A DNA stretch of 64,000 nucleotides, from assembly GCF_006345805.1 (NCBI RefSeq), contig NC_043003.1:96534001-96598000 (forward strand), in the 5' to 3' direction. Below the pieces are notes generated by a model. That model ran no database searches. It saw only the letters and a list, made by a program, of their open reading frames with translations, and was not told where the DNA came from. Source of the DNA: Octopus sinensis (taxonomy: Eukaryota). A program made the translations under genes and the position numbers. Positions 4,562-56,630 of the stretch are shown in pieces. Numbering within the stretch: the first letter of the stretch is position 1; every line of letters begins with the position of its first letter.

Positions 4562-5172
4562 AAATGAAGAAAATGCTGACAAAATAATTTAAGTAAGGGA
4601 GAGTGTATTTAATTAGGTGAAAGTTCTTTTTACCGGTTGCGCATTTGTTATGCTTATCAAAAGATATTTTTTTAAGAGAGATAGAGTTCCTTTCTGATAG
4701 ATTTTTTTTCTCTTATCTGACTTTATGTTGGGTTTGCTGTCTCTTATATGTGAAAAAAGAGGCTCCAGAGTTGTTTAAGATTTGCTTGGTTTTGCGCCTA
4801 AGATTTCTTGTGGACAATGGTCAATACAATTTTGATTGGTCATTATAAAGGGGTCACGTGAATGTTTGAATGGAAGTTGGTGTTGGGGTAAGAAAATAGG
4901 CTCCAGAGATGTTAAAATTTGGCTAGTGTCGCGCTTAAAATTTCTTATTGGTCATAATAAAGAGGTCATGTGGATGTGGTCATAATAGAGAGGTCACGTG
5001 AATGTTTAGAATGAATGATGGTGTGGGTGGTGTATGGAGTTTTCGAAAATAGCATTGTTGAAAATTCTTATTGTTCAGGCTGGTCAGTAGACATCATGTG
5101 GATATTTTAAAAAGCTTTTTAGTGCATAGTTAAGGAGTGTATTTTCCGCCTGACTGCATTTGAGCTGGATGA
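4552..5172 (-). mobile_element. Probable Penelope-like element 3' end abutting (TA)n, with variant hammerhead motif
   Basis: High identity to 58821-59305 (+) and, over its terminal ~145 bp, to 58362-58507. Ends at (TA)n 4521-4553 and has an internal sub-repeat. PLE assignment is inferred from the HHR-like motif and the inverted-end structure of the 58-59 kb copy. Confidence 0.55.
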
Positions 5173-5690
5173 GTGTCCATAGCTTGCACTTGGTGCATCT
5201 TATAGAGTTTCTACCTACACCTTTTTTACAGATCGAGCAGGGCCATCTACCTGAAGGCGTTTGTGACTTGTCTACTTTCCTACTTATTAGGACTTTGGTT
5301 TTGGCTAGATTGATTTTGAGGCCCTTCGATTCTAGACCTTGCTTCCACACCTGAAACTTCTCCTCCAGTTCTGATAATGACTCAGCAATTAGAGCAAGAT
5401 CATCAGCATAGAGGAGCTCCCAGGGGCATCCTGTCTTGAATTCCTCCGTTATTGCCTGGAGGACTATGGTAAATAGGAGGGGACTGAGGACTGAACCTTG
5501 GTGGACCCCAACCTCTACCCGGAATTCTTCACTGTACTCGTTGCCAACCCTCACCTTACTAGCAGCGTCTCTGTACATGGCTCGCACAGCTCTAACTAAC
5601 CATTCATCTATCCCTAGTTTCCTCATTGACCACCAGATAAGGGATCGGGGAACCCTGTTGAAGGCTTTCTCCATGTCAACATATATCCAA
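5172..5690 (-). mobile_element. RTE-clade LINE reverse transcriptase fragment
   Basis: VDMEKAFNRVPR, GVHQGSVLSPLLF, LLYADDLALIAES, GLKINLAKTKVL, then WPCSICKKGVGRNSIRCTKCKLW. Confidence 0.9.
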
Positions 5691-5807
5691 TATTCTGCTA
5701 GTGAAGTACCCAACAAAGTTAATACATAAATGTTAAGGATTGCGATGCAATCAATTCATTTACTGTATTATATGGGCAAAGGTAAAATGATTTACCACAA
5801 ATTACTA

Positions 5808-6530: not shown

Positions 6531-7973
6531 TTGAAATATTTAAAAAATAATCACAAATATTTAAACAATATTTTTAAGATATAAATAATATAATAATTTT
6601 ATTTATAATAAACTCTATTATCAAACTAGAAACTTAAAACTTAACAATTATGATTATATCAAAATCAATTATAATGTTAAATATTAATTTTAATTTTTAA
6701 GGTAAGAAACCCACCAATAATCTAATATCGGTAATAGTCTATATCTAATTACATAAATATTTAAAAAAAAAAAAAATGACTATTATATATAAATTATCAA
6801 TGAAAATATATAAATGTATATAAATATTATAATTAAGATCTAAAATAATCTCTATAAATAAATATATATGCACATATAATAAAGACCTAATAAATTAATT
6901 TTTCATATTTAAAGATGAAATAGCTAATTTCAAAAATACAAACAAACAAACTTAAACGAACTTTCGGAAATCTTATTTAAAATACTTATAGAAATAATCA
7001 ATTCGTAGTTATATAGTATCGAATAAATACTATAAATATATTTATCAATGGGAATAAACTAGCGAATATCAATTTAAAAAGACAATAACTAAGTTATGCT
7101 ATTAAGTTAGACATGGCCTCGACCAATCTTTGGTCGAAACATATCTAAGTTTATCTAATTTTAATTATAAGAAATTTAAAACTACAATTAATACTATTAA
7201 TACATGTATATACATAAACCTAACTTTAGACAACTCGTATACTTACTATCAAACAACAAAACTATCGCTAAGTAATATCTTACGAAAATAAACTTAAATT
7301 TAATATCTAATAATATAGAAAATTACGATAATTAGATCATTACATAAACAACGATATTTACATAAGAAAAATATTATTACACCAAAGACTTATAAAATAT
7401 TAAAATTTACAATTTAAAGATCTTAAATATAAATAAATACTTATCTTAGCGAGGTTTTGTAATGAACTAAAATTTTGAATCGGAAAACGTCTTTACAGCG
7501 TTTATAAGAATACTCGTGGAATTACGTTATTAGCAAAAAAAGAATAAATTGTTGAAGAATTCATTAAGCGTGAGGAACAAATACGCTTTATCAATGAAGA
7601 TTGTGAATGGGAACATTAATGGTTTATCAATAAGTGTAAATAGAATGAAGTCACAAATAAAGAATAAAATCACTCTATACTATAAGATTTATTAATGAAA
7701 TAACTATGATAAATAATACTTAATACAGAATAAATTAAATAATTTAAATGATTAAAAACCACTAATTATTAAATATACACTAAAAATCTTATATGATTAA
7801 TAAATATATAAAAAAAAGTTGTTTTTTTTTATAGTAACCCCTCAACGTACTATAAAGTCTTTCCCAATGCTCTTATAATTATAAGCTAAAATTAGTGATC
7901 ATTATCAAAAACTCTAAAATACTTATCAAAATTTGCGGTATAACTATACATACGTATACATATATATATAAAT

Positions 7974-8019
<46 letters not shown>

Positions 8020-8245
8020 TATATATAAACATATATATATACACACATACACATATGCACACACATACATGTACATACATACAATACTCAATATATACAC
8101 ATACACATATATACACACACCCACAAATAAATGTATATACATATATATACACGCACATCAACCTATACACATATATACATACACACACAAACACATATAT
8201 CATATAAATAAATACATATATAAATGTCTATATTCATACTTCAAT

Positions 8246-8286
<41 letters not shown>

Positions 8287-8788
8287 TTCATATATATAAA
8301 TGTACACATACACGTATAAGAGGAGTGCGTATATTTGGGTTGATAATACATGGTAGTTACAGATGAATGTCCCTTCATTTAAACAGTGTTAGTCATTTCT
8401 GCATAAACATGTTTGGCTATGGGGACATATTACCTTCCTTGGAAACAGATGGTGACCAGAAGGGCATCCAGCTATAGAAAATCTGTCTCAGTAAACTCTG
8501 TCCAACCCATGTAAGCATGGAAAAGTGAATGTTACAATGGTATTGATTGTGTAGGGTAAATAATTTATTTATGATAACAGGAAAAAAAATATTATACTTA
8601 TGCAGGTTGAAATTAAACCAGTATTCTTAGTTTGAATTGAAATTTCACTGAGGAACCTATGTAAATATTTGATCATCTGTGTAAAAATTTTACCCAAAGC
8701 ATTTTACTTAGAATGTTCTGTAAATATGTATGGCTTCATAAAATGTGTTAACAGTTCTTATGTAGTTTTCTCCTTTTTTCAATTTCAG

Positions 8789-12720: not shown

Positions 12721-13565
12721 AAGAACCAATAGAAATAAAATGAGTCCAGGCCTGAATTGATGCTAAAGGACATCACTTTCAGCACCTTGTTTTGTTCATA
12801 ATTTCTATCTGTATCCCATATTGTGATATGTTTGCTAATAAAGAATATGTCAACATTGTGACCAACACTTATATATACATGAAATATATGTAATTAGTGA
12901 TACCCAAAGTATAGTGCTTACATGTTTAGAGCATGATCACTTATCAACAGAGTTTGGTTAATTAATTGCCAAAACAAGTCAGAAATATCAAAAGAAATAA
13001 GAACATGGTGATTTCTAATTAATTTGAAGTCATCTGGAATTATGCTACTGGAAAATGATGGTGACATATGTAATAGAACCCAACACTGTGAATGAAGGCT
13101 TTTTTACCAATTTGATAGTAATTAACTACAGAGATATATTTTGGATCTAGTAGTAAGATTTAGTGTAGCTAGTACTGTAGGATGGTACTTTGTCTTTGGT
13201 GAATCAAATCCATCATTTGAAACTACTTCCACTTATGTTGTTATTGGCCTTAGAATATCTTGACTTTCAATTATTTTTCTAATGTCTTGCCTATGTAAAA
13301 AATTATATTATTACAGTTGTTTTTATTAATGGTTTATTCTTTCAGAAAACCATATGAGTGTTATTAGTCACAGTCACTACAATTGCAGATGAAACATCTA
13401 ATGGTTACTAATTCATATCCACAGACTAGCTTGGCAAAAGATGTCAGTAAATGTACAATTATATGGTCTAAACCAAGAATTATTTAACATCATCATCCGC
13501 TGGATGTATTGACACAGATCCTTAAAGTGACATTGCAAGCTGAAGAGACTTTCTTTTATGCAACA

Positions 13566-16500
13566 TTATGTGTCCTTTTCTGTCACATCAGCAATAGTAG
13601 ACTGAGGTGTATCTGTACTGCCTTCATTACATTCTTCTAAGCCTGTATTTCCTGCAGTTGCTATTGTATTGCCAGCTGTGTCATCCTGCGATCCATCTTG
13701 GCATTCCTCTTTGGAAACTGCATAATATGAAGCTAACATTTTAGCATAACCTGTATCATCTTTATTAAGTTCAAAATCTAAGGATAAAGATTTACTATCA
13801 AACCAACAATCTTCACTACCAGAACTGGATTTAGTTGGTGAATAGTAAGATGCTGAACTTATTTCACTATTGTCTGTATATTCTATATTAGCACCAGTTT
13901 CAGCATTGTTAGTGGGTGATGTTTGTTCATCTTGGCATATGCTTGCTGATATTTCAGATTCTACCTGTTTTGGGGTCTCACAAGTCATTGGCTGGTTTTC
14001 ATAACAGCTTTCATTTCCTAGAGGCATGTCAACCAATGTATCACTAGATCTATCACTTTGTGGATTGCTGTCATTATCAAAATTTTCAAAATTTTCTCCC
14101 AGAGTAAAATGTTGGTCTGTTTGGGACAGATTATCATCACAACAGTCTTTTCCACTTGAGTTATGTCCTTCAGAACAATTGCTTTGGTTAGTTAAGTTAT
14201 CTTCAGTTGCAATCTGGTTTGATTCAGAGATATTACTATCTGCACTGAGTGGCTCACAGCTTTCAGTTTCTGTCAGTGGTGACTGATCTGATTCAGTAAT
14301 ATTCTGGACAACTTCATTGGTTACTAAAGGTTGATGTGTTTGGATTGTATCCTTAGAAGTTTCACTTTCTGTAATTGATTCATCTTGAATATTTGATGGC
14401 AATTCTTGGTTAAGGTCACTTTCAGTAAATGTACTTTGTTCCTTTACAGAAATATCCTTTCCATCATTTTCATTAGTAGAGATTTCTGACTGTGTATCAT
14501 GTACGTTTTCCATATCTGTAGTTGTTACATTCTCCTTAGCTGCTTCATTCTTGCAATCTCCATGTGGTGATGAAGGATATTCTGAAGAAGCACAATATAT
14601 ATTGTCATCAATTGGCACACCTTTAACAGTTTCAAGATTAGAGTCAATATTGCCAGAAACGCTAACTATTTTAGCTTTAGTATACTTATTCTGTGGAATC
14701 AGAAAGAGAAATCCCATGCTGTCAACATCTTCATCAATTCTCTTAACTGGGGAGCTTAATGGAGAAAAGATAACTCGATTTGCTCGTATTTCTTCTTCCT
14801 CTTCCTCAAATGAAGATTCTGTCATTGAATTTGATGGAAAAAAAAATTGTGGGTGAGGAGAAGAAGCTCGGGATGAAGATTCAGGACTGTTTTGAGGACA
14901 GAGTGGAGACTGTCGGCCAGATAAATTAATTTTTTCTTCAAATTGTTTGGTAATTTTTCTAACAGGAGATTCTTTTGGTTTGTTCAAGTCCTCTGTTGGT
15001 TGATGTAACAAATAGCTGTGATCTGTCAGAAAAGCATCAGCAAAAAGTGCACAATCTTTAATTATATTGGATTCAATCTCTTGGGAATTCCGTCTTGGTT
15101 TTCTAGGGGATTCTATGTTATGTAGCGCTTCTTGATTTGTTTTAAACATAGAGTTTGTATCTTCAGTGACTGCCTCTTCCATAACAGTATCTAGTTGATG
15201 GGGAATTGGTGTTATTCTCCCGGTTCGCTTAAGAGTATCAGTAAAGGCAGCATATTCTCTGAAGGCATTCATTTCTGCTTCAGTAGCATTATATGGTAAT
15301 CTGTCCCATCCCTTTTGAGAGAAAGCAGGATTCATTCTACTGTCTTTTTGATTGTCAGGAATATTTTTGGTAGTTTCTGAACCCTTTTCTGCAAGAAATG
15401 TTCTGATTTCACTGCTAATTGAGTCTACAAATACATTCTCTATTCTATTGTCTTCATCTTTGACAGCAGGTGCAATACTGTCATGTTGCATGGTGACAGT
15501 TTCAAATTCAGACTCAGAGTTATATGTTAACGTTTCTACCTTAAATACTTTTGTTTCTTCATCAACATCGATAGAACATTCTTGGAGATTTTTAGTTGGT
15601 TTTTCTGACACTTCACTACCTATGGAAGACATCTGTTCTGAGTCACTAACAATGGTAACGTTATATTCTTTAAAAACTTCATTTGAACTATCAGAATCAT
15701 CACTTTCTTTCGAAGATGTTTCTGTTGAATCTCTGACAATTAAAGGGATACATTCTTCTCCAAGGTTTTCAACCAAAGTACTTGGCAATTCACAGTCTTT
15801 AGAAGACATCTGTTTTGATTCAGTAAATATTTTCTCAATATCATGAGGACTCTCTTTTGTAATTCCTTCCAAAATGTTTTGTAACTCACTGTCTTCTGCA
15901 GATAATTTTATTGATTCAGTGATTACATCATTAACAAATTTTAGAATCTGATCATCTTGATATTTACAGAGGGAATGAGGAGAAAGATCTGGAGATACAC
16001 TGCTTTGTTTTTCAGGAAGCTTTATTGTAATATCCTTTAGAGTCACAGAACTTAATGAAATATCTGCATCTGCATCTACATCATCCAAAACACTTGGAGA
16101 AACCTGAGAGCAACGTCTAACCATAGAACGTCCTCTTTCCCTTGGAACAGAAATAAATATATCATCATCATCATCACTTATAGAAGGTGACTGATTATAT
16201 TTACTTCGAGCAGAATATTTTAAGGGAAATTTTATATTTTCAAAGTCTTCAGAGTCTGTAGAATCTTCAGCACTGCTACTTGGATCATACTCATTATCAT
16301 CGTCACTGAGAATTTTTTCTCTCATGTTATTCTTTTCTAACATATTAGGTAAAACACTTGTTTGCAAATGTTCAGACTTGATATGGTTTTCCCTATCAGC
16401 CTCCACTTCACTTTCCAGTTCATTTAGTTTGAATTTCTCCTCTTTTGTAAATTGACTGCTTAAATCCGGGGCACTTTTAGCAAAGTCTTTGACAATGGCT

Positions 16501-17589
16501 GTTGTTTCATTAAGCTCAAGATGTGGGGAGTTTCCAGCACTCTTTGATTTCTTTGTCAGAAAGTTGTTTTGAGCTGTTTCATCAATGGTGATGAAACCTG
16601 AACTTGTATTTATATATTGCTGACCTTCACTGTTATCTAATTCACTTAAACTATCTGATTCATAGTTTAGACTTGCTAACATACTTTCATTTAGAGTAAT
16701 GTGTGGAATAGAAACACATGAAGAATTTGCAGATACTGAACTTAGTCTATCATTTAAATAATTTGGCATTAATTCATTTTTATTAGGTCCTTCTACTATT
16801 GAAATAAATGAACCACTAGCATTTGATGAAGTCTTGACAAAGGTTGGAGTAGACTCGGAACTGCTCTTTGCTAAACCAGCTTCGACGTCTTCTATAGAGT
16901 TTGCTACATAAATGATATCATTGCCACACATCACAGCACGTAATTGAGGGGCATGTTCTGAAATGTCATCTTTTGGGCCAACTGGAACAGGGCATTGTGG
17001 TCCAATAGTAGGTGTACTCATGAAGTTTTTGCAGTCATTCTCATTTTCTTCTTCGGGTATATTTTCGAGATTATTTTTTATATCATAATGTGATACAAAT
17101 ATGTCAGGAATTGAATCTTCGTTGCTAATTTTGTTAATTACATTCATGTCAACCACTTCATCACAAGAAGATGGTAATTTTAGGTCAGGTAAAGGAATAT
17201 CACTAGCAGACATTGGACCTGTAATAGTGGGTTTCGATTTTTGTGTTGCTTTTGAAGAAATTTCCATTTGCAGAGTTTTGGGATCTTCGGTAATCTGTAT
17301 TGCTGTTCTATTAGGAGTAATTTCAGGTTTTGGTACATGCAATGGAGTTGGGCTACCATCTCGATCAAAATCAACAACAAAGTGGTCAGGTACTGGTTCA
17401 CTTTTGCTAATCATACCAAACGTTGTAATAGTGTTTTGGGGCCCAGTGATGCAAGAAATCCCCATTTCATTACTAAGCGAAGGGCTACTGTTAAACTGGT
17501 ATGGACTGTTCATGTAATCATCATGCCAGGAAAATGGCATACCAGCATTGTTACCACTCATATCATGACTTCGGCTTGTTGGAAGATCA
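13566..17589 (-). CDS. Giant single-exon ORF encoding a ~1340-aa acidic Ser/Thr/Asp/Glu-rich, probably disordered polypeptide; possibly an alternative last exon of DHRSX
   Basis: More than 4 kb without a stop in AT-rich DNA implies coding constraint. Acceptor tatgtatttcag|T at 17590/17589; stop TAA at 13566-13568; AATAAA on - at 13322-13327 and 13333-13338. No recognisable folded domain or TE motif. Confidence 0.85.
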
Positions 17590-17959
17590 CTGAAATACAT
17601 ACGTAAAGATGATTTTGTAAAAGTGGCTGGTAGATTGTGCCATGTTGTCATAGATATGTGTAAATAAAAAATAGGCAACAATGCATTGTGTACTCTACAA
17701 AACTCTGTCTTAAAGATGATAAAGCATTGAGTAGGGAGAATTTCAGAAAGTGCAAACTAAATATGCAGTCTTTAAAAACAAGTGCAGGTGTGTCAAGAGT
17801 TAATATCCCTGCCAAAAATGCATTATGTAGATGTCCGTTACAAGGACATCAAGTTTCAATGTGGAGGATGACAGGGAATCCCAGAAAGTGACTACTGAAG
17901 TGTGACATCTAATTTCAGCTGTACATCATATGGTGAGTAATCACTGTATGCCATGAAGT

Positions 17960-18200
17960 ATATTTACAGTCAGTTGTGCATCAAAAGGACAGATAGAGCA
18001 GATGACCACTGAAGTGTTACATTATGTATATGTATTGTCAGTCGTGCAACATGAGGGCAGGTAGTTCAGGTAGCCAATGATGTGAAACAGACTATATCTG
18101 TTGTCAGTTGTAGATGGAAAAAAGGCAGATAGCTGATGTGACAAATGAGGTATGATTAAGGTATATTCAGCGTCAGTTGTGCATCTAAAGGATAAATAAC
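17960..18200. repeat. Degenerate minisatellite, period ~64-71 bp
   Basis: Core gtcagttgtgcatc or variants at about 17969, 18037, 18101 and 18172. Confidence 0.6.
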
Positions 18201-20822
18201 TTGAGCAAGTGTTGAGGTGTGATGTAGAGTGTATTTAATGCTCTGTACATCTCAAGGTCAGGTAGATTAGAAAACATAACTTATCAGGTGTTTATGAAAA
18301 TTAAGCTCTGGCTGTAAAAAGAAACATCATGAGGTATATCAAGCGTATTGATTGTCTTTGAGGCAAATAAAAAAAACATGAAAATTTGTTTCTGTGAGAT
18401 CAGCAAAAAGTATATCAAAACTACAGCAAGAGTAGGATAATCTTTGGTAACATAATAATGTAGCTCTTACATTCACTTTAATTTAGCTGTGTACATAATC
18501 CTGAACCAAGATTTTCATTTCTATAGTAATAGTTCCGCAGCAGCACTGTTACTTAGGCATTCATGACAAAAAAGAGCTGGTGGTATAGATGAACGGATAA
18601 CACAATGATGTACCTGCTCATAGGTTGTGAGTTCAAATCGACTTGAGTCATTTTGTTGTTTCTGGGCACAGTTCTTTATGCTATACTTCTGCTTACCAAC
18701 TTATTGGTAATAAGCATGTGAACATCTGCAAGGACTATAGTGTTCTATCCACAGGGGAGAGTAACCTTTGGTTTGTTTCCTGCTTTGAAACTGGAGCAAA
18801 GCACCAATCCTTAAAAGTCCTTAAAGGTTTTGGAAGCATTTACATGTTTCTTTCCTGATTGCAATACTAAGTGTTGAGCTGTGTGAATGTAGTTACCAAA
18901 AAGTAATGAAATGATGAAAACTAAAAGAAATTTGACTTCCTGTGTTATTTGCTGGTGGTGGTACCTTTTCCTGCTGCCGAAGGTCATTCAGTAAAAGATC
19001 TATGTAGCTCTGTCTGCCTGTATGGAAGTTGAAGAATTTGGATGGATTTTTAAAGGATTAAACCTGAAACACTCAAGTTATTTTATTTACAAGTATTCTA
19101 CTTTACAATACATATGCATGCATGCGTGCACACACACACACACACACAAACATGCATACAGACATGCACACACATATGCACCTGCATGTACAGGTATTGC
19201 TGTTGGGTTAAGAAGTCTGCTTTGTAACCACATAGTGTCATGTTTAATTCCACTATATGGCACCTTAGGCAGGTGTCATCTAATATGGCTTAGGGTTGAC
19301 CAATGCCTCATGAATAAAAATTAGCTGGATAGAAACTGTATGGAAGCATGTTGTCCATATATATATATATATACATCATCATCATCATCATTTAGCATCT
19401 GCTTTCCATGCTGGCATGGGTTGGACGGTTCAACTGGGCTCTGGGAAGCCAGAAGGCTGCATCAGGCCCAGTCTGATCTGGCAATGTTTCTACGGCTGGA
19501 TGCCCTTCCTAACGCCAACCACTCCATGAGTGTAGTGGGTGCTTTTACGTGCCACCAGCACAGGTGCCAGACGAGGCTGGCAAACGGCCATGATCGGATG
19601 GTGCTTTTTATGTCCCACCGGCACAGGTGCCAGGCGAGGCTGGCAACGGCCACGATCAGATGGTGCTTTCTACATGCCACTGGCACGTATATATATATAT
19701 AATATATATGTATAAATATATATAGACAGAGGGCTTCCAAGCAGTTTCACACACACACACATTTGTGTGTGTCTGTGCGTGTTCTTGTGTAGGTCTTTAT
19801 AATGCCACCATTCTGCTGACAGTGATAATGTTTATGTCCCTCACAAGCAAAAATTCTGGCACTTCATGAAAGGTCATGAAATAAAGTACCTTAGTTAAAA
19901 ACAAGCAAAAGTCAGTGTTTGGAAGAGCATCTAGCTGTACAAATCCACAACCAACAAATCTTGTCTAACCCATGCCAGCATAGAAAAGCAGTGGATAGAT
20001 AAAGAATATTGATGATGACAATGATATAACACAAATCTGTGCACACATACATATATATACTCACAGGTGTACAACTGAAACAAAATATAATAATAATAAT
20101 ATAATAATAATCCTTTCTACTAAAAGCACAGGGCCTGAAATTTGAGGAGAGAGGACTTGTTAAACCCCAGTGTTTCACTGGTACTTAATTTATTGACTCC
20201 AAAAGGATGAAAGGCAAAGTCAACCATTTAAGGTGTAAGTGCACAAGGTAGTCTGACTCTGCATAAGGAATAGACAACCACACACACACACACATGTATG
20301 TGTGTGTGTGTGTGCAACTGTGTTTGTTTACATTTGTGCATCTCTGGAAATTGCATGCTTTCTTGTCAACAAATCATCCACTAGATTTGTGTTTCCAAAG
20401 ATGTGTGAAATAAAAGGCCGCTTTCTTGGAAAACAGGTAAGGGTTAGCAACAGGAAGAGCATCCAGCTGTAAAACAATGTCTCAATAATATAATTGTCTA
20501 ATGCATGCTAGCACTGGAAAACAAATATAAAGACAACAGATTGTAATGGTGGACAAACTGCTTTCATAGGATCCAATCTGCCCATATCTTGAACAATTTA
20601 TATAAACCATATCTGACTCTCAGAATATATGAGAAAGGTACTTGACCATTACAAGTTTTACAAAAGACTGGCACAAGGTCACCAATTACAGAGGCAGGGT
20701 ATAGTCAACTGAATCAGCTTCAGTGCATGGCTGGTACTTATACTGACCTTAAAAAGGTAAAAGGTAAGGTTACTTTCAGCAGGATTTAAACTTGCAAAGT
20801 AAAGATATATTTTTTTTCTTTT

Positions 20823-21009
20823 TCTTTTACTTGTTTCAGTCATTTGACTGTGGCCATGCTGGAGCACCGCCTTTAGTCGAGCAACTCGACCCTGGGACTT
20901 ATTCTTTTGTAAGCCCAGTACTTATTCTATCGGTCTCTTTTGCCGAACCGCTAAGTGACGGGGATATAAACACACCAGCATCGGTTGACAAGCAATGCTA
21001 GGGGGACAA

Positions 21010-21040
<31 letters not shown>

Positions 21041-21210
21041 CATATATACGACAGGCTTCTTTCAGTTTCCGTCTACCAAATCCACTCACAAGGCTTTGGT
21101 TGGCCCGAGGTTATAGAAGAAGACACTTGCCTAAGGTGCCACGCAGTGGGACTGAACCCGGAACCATGTGGTTGGTAAGCAAGCTACTTACCATACAGCC
21201 ACTCCTGCAC
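20823..21210 (-). mobile_element. tRNA-derived SINE family A with internal CA/TA tract
   Basis: A ~390-bp unit (cttttacttgtttcagtcatttgactg.ggccatgctggagcaccgcc...ccacacagccactcct). Near-identical copies at 32433-32832, 41268-41662, 41786-42183 and 47158-47560; partial copies at 4370-4520 and 57690-58250. Confidence 0.8.
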
Positions 21211-23701
21211 CTATATGTAGTAAAATAATTAAAGACATTTTCTGGTTCTCTACAGACTCTCCTCAACCACCCTCTAAGCATCATAAAAATATTAGATAAT
21301 GGCACAAGTAGCACAACCTGCACTCCACAAGAACATATCTGTTACATTCTTTCTTTTAAACATTAAACTAATATAATATTTGTTAATATTTATCCATCAT
21401 GTGTTATCTTTTTTCTTGATTTTGTTCATTACAATTCCAATACATATTATCACACTGATATTGTGTCCCACTAAGGCCAACCTTGTCTTTCATCCTTTTG
21501 GGGGTCAATGGAATAAGTACCAGTTGAATGCTGGGGTCAAAATAAAATTGGGTCTTGTGCTTCCAGTAGAAAGGATTGTTACATTGATATTACAAGACAG
21601 TTAATGGCATAACAGTCAGACAAAGCATCTTGTGATATTTAGCTGCATTTCTTTATGTTCTGAGTTTAAAATCCCACCACAGCTGATTTTAGGGATCAGT
21701 TAAAACAAGAACCAGTTAAATGTGGGATTGATTTAATCAATTGACTCTTTCTCCCCAAATTCATGGTCTTCAATTAATGCAAGAAATCATCATATAGATA
21801 TTATCATTGCTACGATTTTTCTAGATTGTTTGCAATTATTTTACTTTAATTTGTTTGTTTAAACATTGCATGACACACAATTGCAAATAATAATCTACGG
21901 AAAATTCTTATTTCTTATTAAATAGTGTAGCTCATTAGATCAGCCGAAGGTCTTAAAGCCATCCACCATATTTGAGAGGATTAAGAAAAAAATGTAAATA
22001 AAAGAAGAGAAAAAAAAAAACAAAGTACTCTAAAGATAATTATGAAATAGATTAGTTCTGAAGTACTTGATATAACGACATTTCTATTTAGAAAGCCTGT
22101 GTTGATTAAATCTGGGATAATCTTACCAGAAAAATTATTACTCATTTTGTTTTGATATTATTCACACAACAACATACTACAGTCTAATGCTATTTTATAA
22201 CATATTCTTATAATCTCTTTACCCTGGATTAGCTACAGTAGTGTTTAGGCATGTGTTGACGTTACACTCCCCTTTTACCAGCTACCATTCACTTGAAGTA
22301 TCACCAAAGGATGTTCTGTTATAGTTCCATTCACGTCTACAGTGCTTTATTAGAATTGACTCAAGTACTTGATTGCTACTTTATTTTATCAACCCAGGAA
22401 GGATAAATGGCAAAGTTTAGCCACTGGCCTCAGCAAGATTTGAATGCTGCTATTTTCTCTCCTCAACCCTCTTTCACTTTGCTGTCAATCCTCTGTTGAT
22501 CTTAAACACTTCAATATTTTACTTATGCAACTCTGCATATTTTGATAACACTGTACTTTCTACTGCTAATGTCAGCATATAAGCTATGTAACCGCTTGTT
22601 TCATAAAAAAAAAACCTTCCTTTGATATAAAAAAAGATCTTCCTTTCATATCATTAAAGTTTAATGATGTCAAAACTAAAGTATTATTATGGCAGAATCA
22701 TTAGCATGCTGGGCGAAACGTTTATCAGTATTTTGTCTGTCTTTACATTCTGAGTTTAAATTCTGCTGGGGTTGATTTTGTTTTTCATCCTTTCATGGTT
22801 GATAAAATAAGTACTAGCCAAGCACTGGGGTTGATGTGACTAGTCCTCTCCCCTGAAATTTCTGGCCTTGTGCCTCTAGTAAAAAAGATTATTATTTCAA
22901 GCAAGAAATTTAATGGAAAACTTTAATCTTGAAGGACTCCTCTACATTAATACATGTCTCTCTACTTTATGTCATCTGTACAATGTTGCTCCTTTCTCTC
23001 AACTACAAACATCTCATTACAAATGCTCTTATACTAAGAGTCAAATAAATACACTGACACTTAGTGACTGACATTCTGGATTTTCAACCAATATCTACCA
23101 AAAATTTTCATTGAACTTGGTCTAAAATCTAAATCTATCTTCCTTTGAAACATCTATCATATAATATAAAGGCCTCAATCTGCAAAACTAGCTGGTAGCA
23201 ACTGAATCTATCAATCATTGTGTAGTCTTTCATTTCAAGCATTATCATTCAGTAAAGGTTTATTTTCTCCATATTGTTTTATATGATGGCCATGCAATAG
23301 AAAGCAAGGATCAGTGAGATTTTCAATTACTATTATTACTGTTGACATATAGTCAAAGAATGAGTCTTGTAGCTTCGTTAGTAGCTCATGTTTGACTGTA
23401 ATACTTGTTTATTGCCTCTAAGCTACTTCAGTTAGGTATCTTTTTCACCTTGTCAGAATAGGAAGGAAATATTAAAGATTAGGAAGGAAATATTAAAAGC
23501 AATGTTTTTTGCTTTGGTCAAACTGCAAGTGTGATGAGAAAATGTTAAATATCAAAACAAAGATACAATTATTTTACAGCCTTTAACATTTAGGTTTCAT
23601 TTTAATGTATTAAAAACTCCTTCTTCCTTCTTGCAAAAGTGGAAAAATAACAGCAGTAACTCACACACACAACTAACATTTAACAAAGTGTTTGTTCAGA
23701 C

Positions 23702-23884
23702 TTACTGTGGATCAATACCCAAAACTGAACAGGTAGTGTGCCATATTGCTTGTTGAAGCTGCATAGAATTTGACAGTTTACTGGATGTAGCTCTTTCACA
23801 ATTTTCATAGTAACCACCACTTTGCTTCTCAAGGTCTGGAGATAAGGCCACATGTAAAACTGTATCTGCACCTTGTTCAGGTGT
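23702..23884 (-). CDS. DHRSX: DHRSX-like SDR, exon 7 (short-form terminal exon, 183 nt including stop)
   Basis: tttttcag|ACACCTGAA, phase 0. Encodes TPEQGADTVLHVALSPDLEKQSGGYYENCERATSSKLSNSMQLQQAIWHTTCSVLGIDPQ*. The seven exons total 1005 nt = 334 aa plus stop. AATAAA on - at about 23408-23413. Confidence 0.9.
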   Translation of the reverse strand, partial: TPEQGADTVLHVALSPDLEKQSGGYYENCERATSSKLSNSMQLQQAIWHTTCSVLGIDPQ

Positions 23885-25585: not shown

Positions 25586-25805
25586 CAAATAAAAGCGACT
25601 AATTAAGTAGCGAATTAATGGCACTGGAAACACAGCATTTGAATGCAAATTAGTATCGACAACCCCTGGATGAAGAGCATTCACAGTAACACGAAAGCAT
25701 TTGGCTGCTTTTAGCCTGCGAGCCAACTCGTAGGTAGCCATAATCATTGCCAGCTTTGATTGAGAGTATGAAGCATATGGAGAATAACGTGATGGTTTTG
25801 CTCCT
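25586..25805 (-). CDS. DHRSX: DHRSX-like SDR, exon 6 (220 nt)
   Basis: tttcttctcag|AGGAGC...TATTTG|gtaagt, phase 2 to 0. Encodes [53 protein letters not shown]..., with the catalytic YxxxK (YSQSK) and HPGVV.T motifs. Confidence 0.93.
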
Positions 25806-26539: not shown

Positions 26540-26747
26540 TTTGAAGTGAAAGTTGACAAGTCTATATTTCCAACACGGTGTGTTGAAGACGAAACATTTA
26601 CAATCCTAGCAAATAACTGATTTGTCCCTGACATGTTGAGGACAGGAAGTAGCAAGATACTGAGCAAGAAGTGTCCCATATAGTTTACAGCTATGTGCCT
26701 CTCTAAACCATCTTCAGTTTTCTTGTAAGGGACATACATGACAGCAG
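26540..26747 (-). CDS. DHRSX: DHRSX-like SDR, exon 5 (208 nt)
   Basis: ttttgcag|CTGCTGTC...TCAAA|gtaagt, phase 1 to 2. Encodes AVMYVPYKKTEDGLERHIAVNYMGHFLLSILLLPVLNMSGTNQLFARIVNVSSSTHRVGNIDLSTFTS, including the NYxGHFLL and VNVSS (catalytic Ser) motifs. Confidence 0.93.
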
Positions 26748-30009: not shown

Positions 30010-30111
30010 CATTGTTAATCAGTATATGAAGAGGAAGCCTACGAGATTTGAACTCATATGCAAATTTGTGAACAGACTTCATTGAGCCAAGGTCAACTTC
30101 AAATCCTTCAA
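30010..30111 (-). CDS. DHRSX: DHRSX-like SDR, exon 4 (102 nt; not in ORF track)
   Basis: Long pyrimidine tract, ttttag|TTGAAGG...AACAATG|gtatgt, phase 1 to 1. Encodes (I)EGFEVDLGSMKSVHKFAYEFKSRRLPLHILINN(A) with the DL.S..SV and LINNA motifs. Confidence 0.92.
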
Positions 30112-30673: not shown

Positions 30674-33600
30674 TACATTAGTGTCAAGCTCACTTTAATT
30701 CAAAATTATGTCTATTTACAAGTTGAGAGTTAAATTATATTTGCCAGAAACACAGTTAAGTGTTAGATATCTGGCCGAGGCACATGTGAATTTTTGTCTT
30801 GAAGTACAAGTGGAAATCTGCAGTGCAAGTGAGTTTTATACAAGTGACCTATTTCTTTATTACCCACAAGGGGCTAAACATAGAGGGGACAAACAAGGAC
30901 AGACATAGGTATTAAGTCGATTACATCGACCCCAGTGCGTAACTGGTACTTAATTTATCGACCCCGAAAGGATGAAAGGCAAAGTCAACCTCGGCGGAAT
31001 TTGAACTCAGAACGTAGAGGCAGACAAAATACCGCTAAGCATTTTGTCCAGCGCGCTAACGTTTCTGCCAGCTCACCGCCATGAGAGTCAGCTCTGAGCT
31101 CGCACACACTCTACCAACAAGCACAGCCTCCACTTTATCTCATTGTGGCAGCATTCCTGCTGTGTTTTTCCCAGTGTTTTCTTTTTAATTTTGTGTGCTT
31201 TTTGCTATTATTTTATGATAATTAATAGTGTTAGCCATGGGTCCTAAAACGGTTAGTGCAAAAGACTGCTGAGAAGAAAAAGCTGATTATGATAGAATTG
31301 AAAAAGGATACCATTGATGGATGTGAGAGAGGAGTGCATGTAGTTGACATAGCATGTCAACCATCTGCACCATCCTGAAGAAAAAGGACATGATCAAGGC
31401 TGTTACAAAGCACATCTGCCCACAAAGAGATGGAAAAATTGCTTCTCCTGCGGATCAATGAGAAGCAACTTCCAGAAGGATATGATTACGGAGACCATCT
31501 GCGAGAAAGCACAAGAACTGTATGGGGATCTCCTGAAGCAGAATCCTGGAACATTGACAGAGGAGACATCAGCAGATGCATTTAAGGCCAGTTGTGGTGG
31601 ATTCAATAATTTGAAGAAGAGAACTGGTGTTCATAGCATCATCAGGTATGGAGAAGCATTGAGTTCTGACACAAAGGCAGCTGAGAATTTCTTGTGTGAA
31701 TTCCATCAGCTCATCGCAGCCAAGGGGTACATAGCATTACAGGTATTCAACAGTGATGAAACTGGCCTTTTTTGGAACAAAAAAAAAAAAGGCCCAGAAG
31801 AACCTACATAACTGCAGAGGAGAGGAAAATGCTAGGTCACAAGCCTATGGAAGTTAGGCTAACTCTCATCCTTTGTACCAAAGTGAGTGGAGACTTGAAG
31901 ATTAAGCTGCTCCTTGCCTACCATTCTGAAAACTCATGAGTGTTCAAGTTGCACAAAATCCAGAAGGAGAAGCTGCAGGTCATGTGGAGAGCAAAATTGC
32001 CAGGCAATTCTTCTCTGAATGGGTCAAACTTATCTTTGGACCAGCAGTGAAAAAGTACCTTCTGGAGAATGATATTCCTCTCAAGGCCCTCCTCATCCTC
32101 GACAATGCTCCTGCTTACTCTCCTAACTACGAAGATGATACCCTGGATGAATTTAAATTCATAAAAGTTCTATACCTTTCACACAACACCACCCCTATCT
32201 TGCAGCCCATGGACCAACAGGTGATTTCTAATTTTAAGAAATTGTACACCAAATATCTGTTTCGTCGGTTCTTTGGGTACAAATACAAATCTACCATTTG
32301 TGAGTTTTGGAAGGAGCACTACAACATTGCTAACTGTCTGAAAATCATCAATGTGGCCTGGCAGGGTGTAATGAGAAGAATGTTGAATTCTGCATGGAGG
32401 AAATTGTGGTCTGATTCTCTCTTTTCTCTTTTACTCTTTTACTTGTTTCAGTCATTTGACTGCAGCCATGCTGGAGCACCGCCTTTAATGGAGCAACTCG
32501 ACCCCAGGACTTATTCTTTTGTAAGCCCAGTACTTATTCTATCGGTCTCTTTTGACGAACCGCTAAGTAACGGGGACGTAAACACACCAGCATTGGTCGT
32601 CAAGCAATGCTAGGGGGACAAACACAGACACACAAACATACATGCACACACATATATATATACATATATACGACGGGCTTCTTTCAGTTTCCGTCTACCA
32701 AATCCACTCACAAGGCATTGGTCGGCCCGGGGCTATAGCAGAAGACACTTGCCCAAGATGCCACGCAGAGGGACTGAACCCGGAACCATGTTGTTGGTTA
32801 GCAAGCTACTTACCACACAGCCACTCCTGCACCTATTGTGTATCCAAAAGAGACTTCAAGGTGTTTGAGTCTGAGACATCAGTAGTCGAGGAGATAGTGC
32901 CTCTTGGCAAGTCCATGGGCCTCGAGGCTGACAATGGGGACATTAACAATCTTGTCAAGGAACACTCAGAAGGGCTTATGACAGATGAACTCGTGCAGTT
33001 TCAGGAATAGCAGCACTCAGGTGCAGTGGACAAGATTAGTTCCCCAGTAGAGGACAGTGTAGAGGAGAAGGCTATCTCTACAATTGACATAAAGGCAGTG
33101 TTGACAAAGTGGCAGTATGTTTCTGAATTTGTAGAAAAATATCATCCTGGAAAAGTATCTACAGGATGTGCAGCTGTTTCATTTAATGACACTGCTCTGG
33201 CACATTTTGGTAACATTTTGAAAGGAAGGAAAAAGTGGACTTCTCTTGATATGTTTCTAATGAAGTATGAAAAGTGTGAAAGTATGTCCAAAATGCCTAA
33301 ATTAAATGAAGTGTGAGAGAAAATGCCAGAAATTGTTCTTCCTGAAGTCATAATGGAAGGAGATTCTCCTTCCAAACAATAATCCGCCACATCCCTGCTC
33401 CAGCATCTTCCTTGCACACAAATTGTTTCATCTTTAAGGTAATTAAATTAATAAAACCACTTTACATATTTCTTTTGCATTCTCTTTTATTATGATTTTA
33501 CAATTGTCCTTTCCCTAGTAACTGCACCTTTTCTGTTTTAAAGCCCATAAAAAATGATTTTTGGGTGGTTTTGTGGGCCTGGGACAGATCAATTATATTC

Positions 33601-34145: not shown

Positions 34146-34214
34146 TAACTGCATCTGGTTGTTCTTTTTTGATGTCATCAATAGCTTTCTGAATGTGCTT
34201 CTTACAACGGGATG
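34146..34214 (-). CDS. DHRSX: DHRSX-like SDR, exon 3 (69 nt; not in ORF track)
   Basis: tctcttcag|CATCCCGT...GCAGTTA|gtaagt, phase 1 to 1. Encodes (A)SRCKKHIQKAIDDIKKEQPDAV, the SDR alphaC segment. Confidence 0.88.
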
Positions 34215-42697: not shown

Positions 42698-45600
42698 TTC
42701 AAGTCTAACGTAACATCTAAGAAGTTTACTATTTTCGTGTTAGTCATAAATTCTAGTTTTAGATTGAAGGATTTGAAATCCTTCAATCAAATCCTTCAAT
42801 CTAAAACTAGAATTTATGACTAACACGAAAATAGTAAACTTCTTAGATGTTACGTTAGACTTGAACAAGCACCTTCACTACTAGATACATCCACACCTCT
42901 TCCAACCAACCACCCTGTATAATTAATACCACGGTTCAAGCCATCTCAGACAGACTCACTAAGCTATCCTCCAACAGAGATATATTCAATAATTATGCAC
43001 ACCACTACAACCAGGCTCTCTTTAGTGCTGGGTATACCCAGAGAATATCCTATGTAGACCCCCCAGGAACGTCCGTCAGCTGTAAAACTCCCACATATAA
43101 GCGAACTCTGTATTCAGCCCAAGCTAACGCTAATTCTAATTTAACTTCTAACAGAACTAAGCAACGTATAGAAAGAAGGCGAACCAATAGAATGGTACAC
43201 AATGAAAACCCTTCCGACAAGAGTAACACCGATCATATTAGGGGAAATAGAGGCAGAAACAGTAGATTACGTAACTATATATGGTACAACATAGCAGTTA
43301 TGGGTAAATTATGTAAGAAAATATTCTCTATTATTTCCAACAACTTCCCACCCACCCATAAGTATAGAAGTATCTTCTCTAACAAAACCATTAGGATCTC
43401 CTACTCTACCCTGCCCAACATGAGCTGCCTCATAGCTAAGCATAACAATATTAACATTAGAACAGCTAGATTAGGAGCAGGCTATAATGACCAATCAAAC
43501 CCCATTCATCCAGGCAGTAGTCAATATAATTGGGCTGGCAACCATAATACCCAAACCGCTAGTAATAACACCCGTCAACACAACAGAGGCAACACCACAC
43601 CCATCAACAACCAGGAGGATAACAGTGCTCCTACACTTAATGCAACACCTCCCCCTGGGACTAATAGCACACGACCGGGAAACGCAGTGCCCTGCAACTG
43701 CATAAGTGCATCCGAATGTCCGTTTCATGGGGAATGTCGGGCTAAAAACGTAATCTATTCATGTGAGGTGAGTACCCAGTTTAACACACTCACCTACATA
43801 GGTTGCTCGACCTCCTGGAAATCAAGATACTACAACCACCGGTCCTCGTTCAAGCATAGACACAAGGCTAGCAGCACCTCCCTATCTAAAAAAATTTGGG
43901 AATTAAAAGACAATAGCATAGGTTTCAAACTCAGATGGTCCATCATCGGATCAGCTGCACCTTATTTAAATAATAGAACAGGATGCCAGCTATGTTGTGT
44001 GGAACTCCTGAATATCTTGAAATTCAAGGAGAAACACAATCTAATTAATAAAAGATCTGAATTCAAGCCCTCTTGTATACACAAACTAACCAATACTTTT
44101 AAATACTACAAAGCTTAGGCTATTATACCAACTCCCCCATGCAATATCCTCCCATCCAAGTACAACTTGTCAGCTCCAGCACATCCCATTTTTTTCCTAT
44201 ATATATATATTTTTTTTCCTATATATATATATTTTGTCTCCCATATATTTTTTTTCCTATATATTTCTTTTCCTACATCTATCTTTTTCCTATATATATT
44301 TTTTTTTCCCTATATCTATACCTCTTTCCATTTCTAGCTTTGATGTTGAGCGCACACCCCCGAACCCCGCTTCCCACCCTTTCACTTATGACTACTCCGT
44401 AATTTTCCCCTCCTCCCTGCCTCAGTTCCCCTCCCCGCCCCTAGGTGGTCACCTTTAACACACACCTGTAACTTTACCTTTGCAACCACCTTTTATTTTT
44501 ACCTTCATTTCATGTTAATCTTTACTCGATTACCTTTATGTTTTATTTTATTTTATTTTTTATTTCTAATTTTTAATTTTATCCTTACTTTTACTTCTAT
44601 TTTTACTCCTATTTTATCACTTTTTATCTCTATGTATGTCTATTTTTAGTTCTTTTTCCTTATATGCTTATCTATGTATCTGTATGTATATGTATATGTG
44701 TGTGCGTATGAATATGTATGTGTGTTTATATGTGTATGCCTTCTTTTATATTTTTTAATATTTTTTTATATATTTTATATATATCTATATATATATGTGT
44801 GTGTGTCTGTGTATGTATATGTATGTGTATACGCATATATAGACACACAGATATATGTGTGTGCGTGTGGATGTGTGTGTGTGTGGGTCCATGTGTATGT
44901 ATATATGCATGTATGTATATATATATATATGTGTGTGTGTGTATGTATGTACACATATATATGCGTGTGTGTGTATGTGTATATGTATATATATATATAT
45001 ATGTGTGTGTATATATATATATGCATATATATATATATTCTGTTATACTTTCTTACCCTCAGGTTTCTTACTTTCATGTCTACCTTTTGTACCCACTATA
45101 ATTCCGTATCTTGCCTGTGTGCGAGAATGGATCTACTTGTTATACCTGTGTCTGTGCATATGCATATTTTTGTGTATATGCATAGGGATCTACTCCCCCA
45201 TGTGTGTGGGTGTATGCATATTTTGCCCATATGCATAGAGATTCACTTCGTTTTGTGAATGAGTGTAAGTGCGAGTGTGCCTGTATGTGCGCATGTGCGT
45301 GTATGTATATACGTACATATGCGCGCCAGTTCGTGTACCCAACTACATGTGCCTTTTCCCGTATGTATCTGTATATTTTTACATGAGAGTACATATGTAT
45401 GCTTGTATGCATGCCGTTGTGTATGCGTGCGTATATGTGTATATGTATCCATACGTGTATGCATGTACATGTTGACCACTAGACAATTTATGAGGAAATA
45501 GATAAGCGGTTTAACCACAAACCAGACAACCCTAATCTACAATATACTGGGTCCCCAGACGTCCCAGTTGATTTATGACACCCACTGCTTAGGCTTCTAC

Positions 45601-53071: not shown

Positions 53072-53179
53072 CGATAATAACATGCATTCCCAGGCTGCAA
53101 AGAGTCTTTATGGTGTAGTAGCCAATGCCTGTGGTTCCCCCAGTGACTATAGCAACTCTTCCATGTTGTGGGGGCAAGG
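53072..53179 (-). CDS. DHRSX: DHRSX-like SDR, exon 2 (108 nt)
   Basis: ttttcag|...|gtaagt. Encodes (A)LPPQHGRVAIVTGGTTGIGYYTIKTLCSLGMHVII with the Rossmann TGxxxGxG motif; closely resembles human DHRSX FPPRPDRVAIVTGGTDGIGYSTAKHLARLGMHVII (recalled). Confidence 0.92.
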
Positions 53180-56515: not shown

Positions 56516-56630
56516 CTGATGGTTTCTTGCGTTCATTGGTAACATCCTGGAATAAAGATCGCACTCCGATATAATAAAGCAACATAAAATTCCATACGAT
56601 CCATAACCAGTCCAATAACATTTGCCACAT
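56516..56630 (-). CDS. DHRSX: DHRSX-like short-chain dehydrogenase, exon 1 (115 nt)
   Basis: ATG in context cagccATG. Encodes the hydrophobic Trp-rich N-terminus MWQMLLDWLWIVWNFMLLYYIGVRSLFQDVTNERKKPS. Donor AG|GTTTGA is weak but gives phase 1, matching exon 2. Confidence 0.75.

Follow-up and report, generated by a model that had tools for sequence, protein, structure and literature searches.

A predicted single DHRSX gene in Octopus sinensis, with a splice donor on the ancestral stop position and a giant terminal exon

We analyzed a 64,000-nucleotide (nt) stretch of the Octopus sinensis genome (contig NC_043003.1, positions 96,534,001 to 96,598,000), hereafter the window, to whose positions all coordinates refer. 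It holds LOC115214136, a gene of ~43 kb with eight exons on the minus strand. The gene model was rebuilt from the window with GT-AG introns (Table 1), and its spliced translation of 1674 amino acids (aa) matched RefSeq XP_036360870.1 exactly, an entry titled "uncharacterized protein LOC115214136 [Octopus sinensis]." Exons 1 to 7 encode a short-chain dehydrogenase/reductase (SDR), identified below as DHRSX, and the eighth, a giant terminal exon, encodes a tail that is letter for letter identical to residues 335–1674 of the RefSeq protein. Phases after exons 1 to 7 were 1, 1, 1, 1, 2, 0, and 2. Exon 7 ends GGT ATT GAT CCA CA/G TAA GTC (slash, exon boundary; CAG at 23707-23705), and the giant exon opens with T at 17589, followed by GAT CTT CCA, and stays in frame for 1340 residues to a TAA at 13568-13566. 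Its acceptor phase fits only two of the seven upstream donors, those of exons 5 and 7. Exon 7 is the nearest fitting donor, with a perfect GTAAGT, and lies 6.1 kb from the giant exon in Octopus and 2.8 kb in Argonauta. A first-pass annotation of the same DNA had proposed this arrangement, that is, a phase-2 donor overlapping the stop of exon 7, an acceptor needing two upstream bases, and an AATAAA near both ends. These elements were all present, and the product it predicted was right to the residue: CA plus T codes for His, GIDPH-DLPTSR is the sequence across the junction, and the whole protein has 1674 aa.

Table 1. Features of LOC115214136 in the window
Feature	Position	Strand	Remarks	Basis
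DHRSX exon 1	56516..56630	-	ATG at 56630; hydrophobic N-terminal helix MWQMLLDWLWIVWNFMLLYYIGV	tblastn, spliced model
DHRSX exon 2	53072..53179	-	codes TGGxxGIG cofactor-binding motif	tblastn, spliced model, alignment
DHRSX exon 3	34146..34214	-		tblastn, spliced model
DHRSX exon 4	30010..30111	-		tblastn, spliced model
DHRSX exon 5	26540..26747	-	phase-2 donor AAA/GTAAGT; read-through also gives in-frame TAA	spliced model
DHRSX exon 6	25586..25805	-	codes YxxxK catalytic motif	tblastn, spliced model, alignment
DHRSX exon 7	23706..23884	-	end of SDR domain (...CSVLGIDP + CA); end corresponds to C-terminus of animal DHRSX orthologs	
Exon 7 5' splice site GTAAGT	23700..23705	-	phase 2; in-frame TAA 23704-23702 inside	
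Intronic AATAAA	23408..23413	-	293 nt past donor; candidate polyadenylation signal for a 334-aa, TAA-stopped form	
Small alternative 3' exon	18984..19017	-	acceptor ccatacag/G; with exon 7 CA codes Q-QTELHRSFTE-stop	O. vulgaris gene model
Intronic in-frame ATG	17649..17651	-	Octopus species only; start of separate 1361-aa gene in O. vulgaris annotation	
Giant-exon 3' splice site AG	17590..17591	-	tatgtatttcag/T; position and phase kept in octopus, Argonauta, cuttlefish	
Giant terminal exon	13566..17589	-	4,024 nt; third base of His codon + 1340 codons + TAA	
Two AATAAA signals (13338-13333, 13327-13322)	13322..13338	-	~230-245 nt past giant-exon stop; conserved in Logan octopus contig L001	

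The N-terminal 333 residues form an adh_short SDR, with Pfam PF00106 and PF13561 recorded for the fused proteins. On alignment with DHRSX from nine other species, the columns G52, G53, G56, and G58, N130, N131, and A132, S184/S185, Y214, and K218 were invariant, and the TGGxxGIG, NNA, conserved Ser, and YxxxK motifs were all intact. The best named matches of this part were DHRSX/polyprenol dehydrogenase (43–46% identity), not RDH11-14 or other SDRs. Other SDR matches in the 2.7-Gb O. sinensis genome were 29–47% identical, the full-length ones being intronless open reading frames (ORFs) at 34–38%. Judged by sequence, this gene is the sole DHRSX ortholog in the O. sinensis genome; polyprenol/dolichal dehydrogenase activity is predicted for its product. 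In the revised route from polyprenol to dolichol, human DHRSX was recently shown to catalyze steps one and three. The human protein carries a hydrophobic helix at its N-terminus and localizes to lipid droplets and in a reticular pattern, and its loss causes a glycosylation disorder (Wilson et al. 2024, PMC11250103).

Several intronless SDR frames were clustered in the genome, on contigs C11 (20.85–21.98 Mb), C4 (152.45–152.50 Mb), C29 (4.29–5.67 Mb), and C25. They were 34–38% identical to the DHRSX part, measured ~220 aa on C29 and 303–337 aa elsewhere, and are probably tandemly duplicated single-exon RDH-like genes.

Every aligned DHRSX protein (gastropod, bivalve, nemertean, amphioxus, fishes, ape, and coral) ended at most ~4 residues from the octopus ...GIDP. 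Because DHRSX proteins across Metazoa end there, exon 7 appears to end at the ancestral C-terminus. The donor in coleoids sits on the ancestral stop position, and reading the exon 7 TAA would give a canonical 334-aa enzyme. In its 333-residue SDR, its helix, its motifs, a C-terminus that aligns from cnidarians to primates, and its single copy, the octopus exon 1–7 unit resembles DHRSX elsewhere. It departs from DHRSX elsewhere (~320–335 aa) in that the coleoid stop position is a splice donor and that the annotated octopod product has 1340 additional residues. The first-pass annotation had pointed out the overlap of stop and donor. A phase-2 intron with a consensus GTAAGT always reads xxG TAA, as is also seen at the donor of exon 5. 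The overlap is uninformative alone because it is automatic for such introns.

Regarding the giant exon, a 4-kb frame is open in DNA of 36% GC, it is conserved to cuttlefish, and its ratio of non-synonymous to synonymous substitution rates (dN/dS) was 0.34–0.41. Clearly, by these measures, the frame reads as real coding sequence, and the tail is under relaxed purifying selection.

We then considered whether this exon is joined to an upstream coding exon. The donor context CCACAGTAAGTC was identical in Argonauta, and the GTAAGT itself was identical in O. bimaculoides and Argonauta. The acceptor TTTCAG/YGAYCTYCC was found at the same position in O. bimaculoides, in a third Octopus (Logan contig L001), in Argonauta, and in the cuttlefish Acanthosepion pharaonis. 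Contig L001 (SRR11869385) was considered as a transcript and set aside, as it runs collinear with the genome to either side of the acceptor and beyond the poly(A) signal and is most likely genomic. The peptide DLP(T/S)SRSH(D/E), lying between the acceptor and the first Met, was common to all five sequences. Before the first Met, 8 of 27 nucleotides differed between cuttlefish and O. sinensis, seven of the eight at third positions (P = 0.0026, random-position null), and the four differences between Argonauta and O. sinensis were all at third positions (P = 0.012). Such a codon-position pattern reads as the signature of translated sequence. An in-frame stop was present seven codons (Argonauta) and eight codons (cuttlefish) upstream of the acceptor, with no ATG between. 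Since the giant exon is coding from its acceptor onward and the upstream stop is followed by no ATG, its frame must come from an upstream phase-2 coding exon. On this evidence, the giant exon does not appear to be a gene of its own.

The O. vulgaris annotation proposes the opposite with CAI9726067.1, namely an independent single-exon gene that starts from the intronic ATG 17651 (MTTWHNLP...). As a matter of consistency with that proposal, the frame is open from 17756 and the ATG occurs in three Octopus species. The same ATG, which the first-pass annotation had named (~17651) as the start whose independence would speak against its own proposal, was found in Octopus only; the stop just upstream of the acceptor in Argonauta and cuttlefish, and a DLPxSRSH peptide kept by synonymous changes, both argue against translation from it. 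Moreover, the ATG and the acceptor are 21 codons apart, and in these codons five sites changed between two Octopus species, four of them non-synonymously, as in an intron; this stretch holds the polypyrimidine tract and the AG of the conserved acceptor. We consider an independent gene starting there very improbable. Read-through of two independent genes was tested as well, and no start codon of its own was found for the downstream part, nor any homolog outside coleoids that might represent an ancestral free-standing gene.

The long protein is already public in RefSeq. A homology search with the 1340-residue tail as query gave four clusters, one of which comprised XP_036360870.1 (1674 aa), O. 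bimaculoides XP_014767443.1 / UniProt A0A0L8I2P6 (1669 aa), and the 1361-aa O. vulgaris model. The junction GIDPH-DLPTSRSH was present in the O. bimaculoides model and in Argonauta hians GAB1598296.1 (1576 aa). The three proteins with the junction have the same architecture as the window model; they are labelled uncharacterized or hypothetical, and none is named DHRSX. The earlier statement that no long-tailed form was known has to be corrected, the form being annotated in two RefSeq octopus sets, in a UniProt entry, and in the Argonauta annotation. In a full-text literature search, neither the locus identifier nor the accessions turned up in any paper, and a search for DHRSX in cephalopods found nothing relevant.

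Other annotations treat the locus differently. That of O. vulgaris splits it (locus L011) into two genes, CAI9726066.1 (P0009) for the enzyme and CAI9726067.1 (P0006) for the tail. In its enzyme model, the helix of exon 1 is missing and ~165 unrelated N-terminal residues stand in its place, so that the model is probably chimeric. The model ends IDPQ/QTELHRSFTE-stop, in a small exon whose start maps to window position 19017, again via a CA/GT donor. This putative small exon (18984..19017) is present in O. bimaculoides; it was looked for in Argonauta and not found. For A. pharaonis, the model called "DHRSX" (P0013) is of low complexity at its N-terminus and wrong at its C-terminus, and the stand-alone cuttlefish tail model (P0005) starts at the first Met, which does not align to the octopus Met. 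Both stand-alone tail models, from O. vulgaris and from cuttlefish, seem to start at positions that conservation contradicts.

TA/CA-rich microsatellite tracts at window positions 7856-8299 and 18995-19702 make spurious open frames on both strands. The second lies directly upstream of the small exon and partly overlaps it.

RNA-derived sequences bearing on the donor came from cuttlefish. About 50 cuttlefish RNA contigs (Logan, ~2.7 kb, many runs) encode a full DHRSX in which the homologous donor is spliced in phase 2. They continue ...CSVLNIDPH/EMQMKPESEVNPAIKKEEGEEEEKKKED-stop, that is, with the same split His codon followed by a small terminal exon, and give a 362-aa DHRSX. The small cuttlefish exon (EMQMKPESEV...KKKED) was sought in the octopus window, in Argonauta, and in 10 kb on either side of the cuttlefish giant exon, with no credible match. 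Some 13 cuttlefish RNA contigs (P0011, P0012; 376 aa) have 14 additional residues, VDYTGCTSLL(D/G)NNA, inserted behind ...MHVII where exons 2 and 3 meet. They represent an alternatively spliced cuttlefish DHRSX, in which the region just past the first beta-alpha-beta unit is interrupted.

Instead of being joined to exon 7, the giant exon could belong to a separate transcription unit, whose first exon (ATG ... NN/GT, phase 2) would have gone unrecognized in the 6.1-kb interval, or it could use DHRSX exon 5, the DHRSX-tail models then being fusions made by predictors. The first-pass annotation had seen no other upstream exon for the ORF between exon 7 and the giant exon. We compared the octopus 6.1-kb and Argonauta 2.8-kb intervals and found two conserved or repeated blocks, the best of which has stops in all frames. 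No hidden first exon was found by this comparison, which a very short exon would escape, and nothing matched in the 10 kb that precede the giant exon in cuttlefish. Exon 7 offers the closest phase-2 donor on the upstream side, its homolog is used in cuttlefish, and three different annotations agree on this junction. A hidden exon is further disfavored by the shortness of the Argonauta interval, by the stops in every frame of the blocks it shares with octopus, and by the starts of the two stand-alone models, which lie where conservation argues against them.

One block in intron 7 (window 22085-22241, minus strand) deserves mention in its own right. It is a 165-nt block, 73% identical to the Argonauta intron (L003 ~44936-45097), with stops in all frames in both species. 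It is thus a conserved non-coding element, placed between the donor and the giant exon, and could regulate splicing or polyadenylation.

Several observations weigh against a join between exon 7 and the giant exon, and a separate unit would account for some of them. A junction-centered profile (exon 7 plus the first 270 tail residues, built from octopus, Argonauta, and cuttlefish) searched in 5.8 billion proteins, including Logan RNA assemblies, returned no octopus 23706/17589 junction and no RNA-derived octopus fragment. The abundant cuttlefish mRNA joins the donor to the small exon, and among the searched contigs none from cuttlefish joined exon 7 to the giant exon. There, the linkage of DHRSX and giant exon amounts to presence on the same 2.55-Mb contig only. 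The two parts are separate in the O. vulgaris annotation, and in that of cuttlefish the tail is a protein by itself. Gene predictors can fuse neighboring genes, and phase compatibility alone arises one time in three. Taking both sides together, we hold a separate transcription unit to be quite unlikely, and the join of exon 7 to the giant exon is strongly inferred from the comparative evidence.

Given that join, we wondered whether octopus would also make an enzyme-only form. The first-pass annotation had imagined a composite terminal exon that switches between stopping at the TAA, with polyadenylation at the AATAAA of 23413, and splicing. As written, this switch is not supported; the cuttlefish RNA contigs, the only transcripts found, make the short enzyme through a splice from this donor into a small terminal exon and do not stop at the TAA. 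A usable 5' splice site was found at the coding end of the potential terminal exon, namely ACA/GTAAGT (23705-23700), whose homologous donor is spliced in cuttlefish RNA. The AATAAA 293 nt past the donor is conserved in O. bimaculoides, and the sole intronic AATAAA of Argonauta lies at 382 nt; with about one such hexamer per kb here, this is weak evidence.

In a constitutive eight-exon gene making the long form only, neither the AATAAA at 23413 nor the small exon starting at 19017 would be used, the TAA would be no more than the consensus GTAAGT read in phase 2, and DHRSX activity would lie in the 1674-aa protein alone. Such a gene agrees with RefSeq, which lists one product and no isoform labels for O. 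sinensis as well as for O. bimaculoides, with the same TAA-in-donor pattern at exon 5, and with the frequency of AATAAA in an AT-rich intron. The collection of 5.8 billion proteins moreover contained no 334-aa octopus product, nor, apart from the odd O. vulgaris model, any octopus DHRSX of 334 to 345 aa. Yet an enzyme-only query of that collection retrieved no octopus RNA-derived DHRSX fragment of any form, only the cuttlefish short-form contigs and genomic pieces. Octopus DHRSX transcripts being missing from the collection altogether, the absence of a short octopus form is uninformative. Against such a gene, the enzyme-only form is abundant in cuttlefish and made from this same donor, a small spliced exon was preferred over the immediate stop by the O. 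vulgaris pipeline, which hints at junction evidence, and the AATAAA lies at a similar distance past the donor in Octopus and Argonauta. All in all, a gene restricted to the long form seems unlikely to us.

Composite terminal exons and intronic polyadenylation switches are known from other genes, such as immunoglobulin mu (secreted versus membrane form), and calcitonin/CGRP uses alternative 3' exons. The octopus locus resembles them in that a coding exon which could be terminal ends on a 5' splice site, the intron behind it has a candidate poly(A) signal, and alternative terminal exons, one small and one giant, follow downstream. Unlike immunoglobulin mu, the documented short form, that of cuttlefish, uses an alternative spliced terminal exon, which is a plain choice of last exon, and the intronic poly(A) site here is putative. 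Vertebrates offer a second comparison with DHRSX-ZBED1, in which a large single coding exon is expressed from the DHRSX transcription unit. As it happens, some matches named "ZBED1 isoform" are DHRSX proteins. In both cases, a large ORF contained in one exon lies within or beside DHRSX and needs DHRSX exons to be spliced onto it. However, ZBED1 shares only 5' exons, has its own ATG, and yields a separate, hAT transposase-derived protein, whereas the octopus exon is fused in frame to a complete enzyme and has no recognizable domain.

The tail itself is acidic and rich in Ser (14% Ser, 18% Asp plus Glu, net charge -140). A Pfam search gave no match (best E-value 0.14), nor did a profile search of the PDB, and a tail profile run against 1.84 billion representative proteins recovered cephalopod sequences only, plus one bacterial match. 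The latter, a repeat protein with DUF7507 repeats (P0129), was rejected as spurious. In an AlphaFold2 (AF2) model, the mean predicted local distance difference test (pLDDT) score was 34 and 904 of 991 residues scored below 50, in an alignment of only five sequences, which weakens the call of disorder. The model predicts a mostly disordered tail.

Conservation within it was concentrated in about nine short blocks shared by octopus and cuttlefish: DLPxSRSH...FSWHxDYMNSPYQ, RAVMCGNDI, LNESML, ERGRxMVRR, YQDxxILxFVNxIITESxK, AFxQKGWDRLP, CPQNSP, a hydrophobic stretch around KAxIV, and a C-terminal EDCWFDS...Y(A/E)(K/R)M(L/I)A(S/A)Y. The few helices that AF2 predicts in the tail coincide with some of these blocks. 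One example is a conserved helix at tail residues ~543–561 (window ~15906-15962, minus strand), YQDDQILKFVNDVITESIK (cuttlefish YQDNMILEFVNGIITESVK), with an AF2 helix at 537–564. Its paired hydrophobic spacing, FV-xx-VI-xx-SI, resembles the one typical of A-kinase anchoring helices. The tryptic peptide spanning the junction between enzyme and tail would be LSNSMQLQQAIWHTTCSVLGIDPHDLPTSR.

Altogether, we propose that the ancestral DHRSX stop position in coleoids carries a consensus phase-2 donor, CA/GTAAGT, and that splicing there would replace the stop with His and append downstream sequence. In octopods, the appended sequence would be the 4,024-nt terminal exon, giving the acidic, Ser-rich tail and the 1674-aa protein. 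Alternatively, splicing may lead from this donor to a small terminal exon, as in cuttlefish RNA and at 19017 in the O. vulgaris annotation, or the donor may stay unspliced and the transcript be cleaved past the AATAAA at 23413. An enzyme-only form of ~334–362 aa would in that case arise from the locus together with an enzyme tethered to the tail. Of this overall picture, a single DHRSX gene with a giant tail exon and alternative enzyme-only forms, we are fairly but not fully confident. As for function, the tail might be a cytosolic, membrane-anchored scaffold or a phospho-regulated region, probably heavily phosphorylated. Its placement on the cytosolic side of membranes is suggested because human DHRSX sits on endoplasmic reticulum and lipid-droplet membranes via its N-terminal helix. 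A more daring version, in which the coleoid donor on the DHRSX stop decides between enzyme only and enzyme plus an acidic disordered scaffold of coleoid origin, anchored on endoplasmic reticulum or lipid-droplet membranes and bearing an amphipathic, kinase-anchoring-like helix, (Y)QDxxILxFVNxIITESxK, and thereby creates a new signaling platform on a housekeeping enzyme, is doubtful, and we offer it as speculation.

Two further frames in the window are of mobile origin or look so. Intron 3 of DHRSX contains, on the plus strand at 31930-32613, a 227-aa open frame with a DDE_1 superfamily endonuclease match (Pfam PF03184, E = 1.9e-17), to be read from this match as a transposase remnant. Downstream of the gene, at 5084-5755 on the minus strand, an open frame of 223 aa contains ...LLYADDLALI..., a motif like those of reverse transcriptases, and is probably a fragment of a long interspersed nuclear element (LINE) or another retroelement.

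What is new here is the recognition of a public entry as DHRSX plus a tail for which no homolog was detected outside coleoids, together with the position of the donor on the ancestral stop and the mis-started stand-alone models. For the octopods' sole DHRSX gene, the annotations give a protein with five times the length of the enzyme, which apparently went unrecognized as DHRSX in "uncharacterized" entries. At the level that sequence allows, our analysis settles the correct annotation of the locus, which should be one gene. Mechanistically, the locus is ordinary, with a choice between alternative last exons or the capture of an exon that extends the C-terminus; both are common and neither is new. 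If the fused form is expressed, it would be a clean case of a stop codon that became a splice donor and so added a lineage-specific region to DHRSX, and a housekeeping lipid enzyme would serve as the anchor of a large disordered region.

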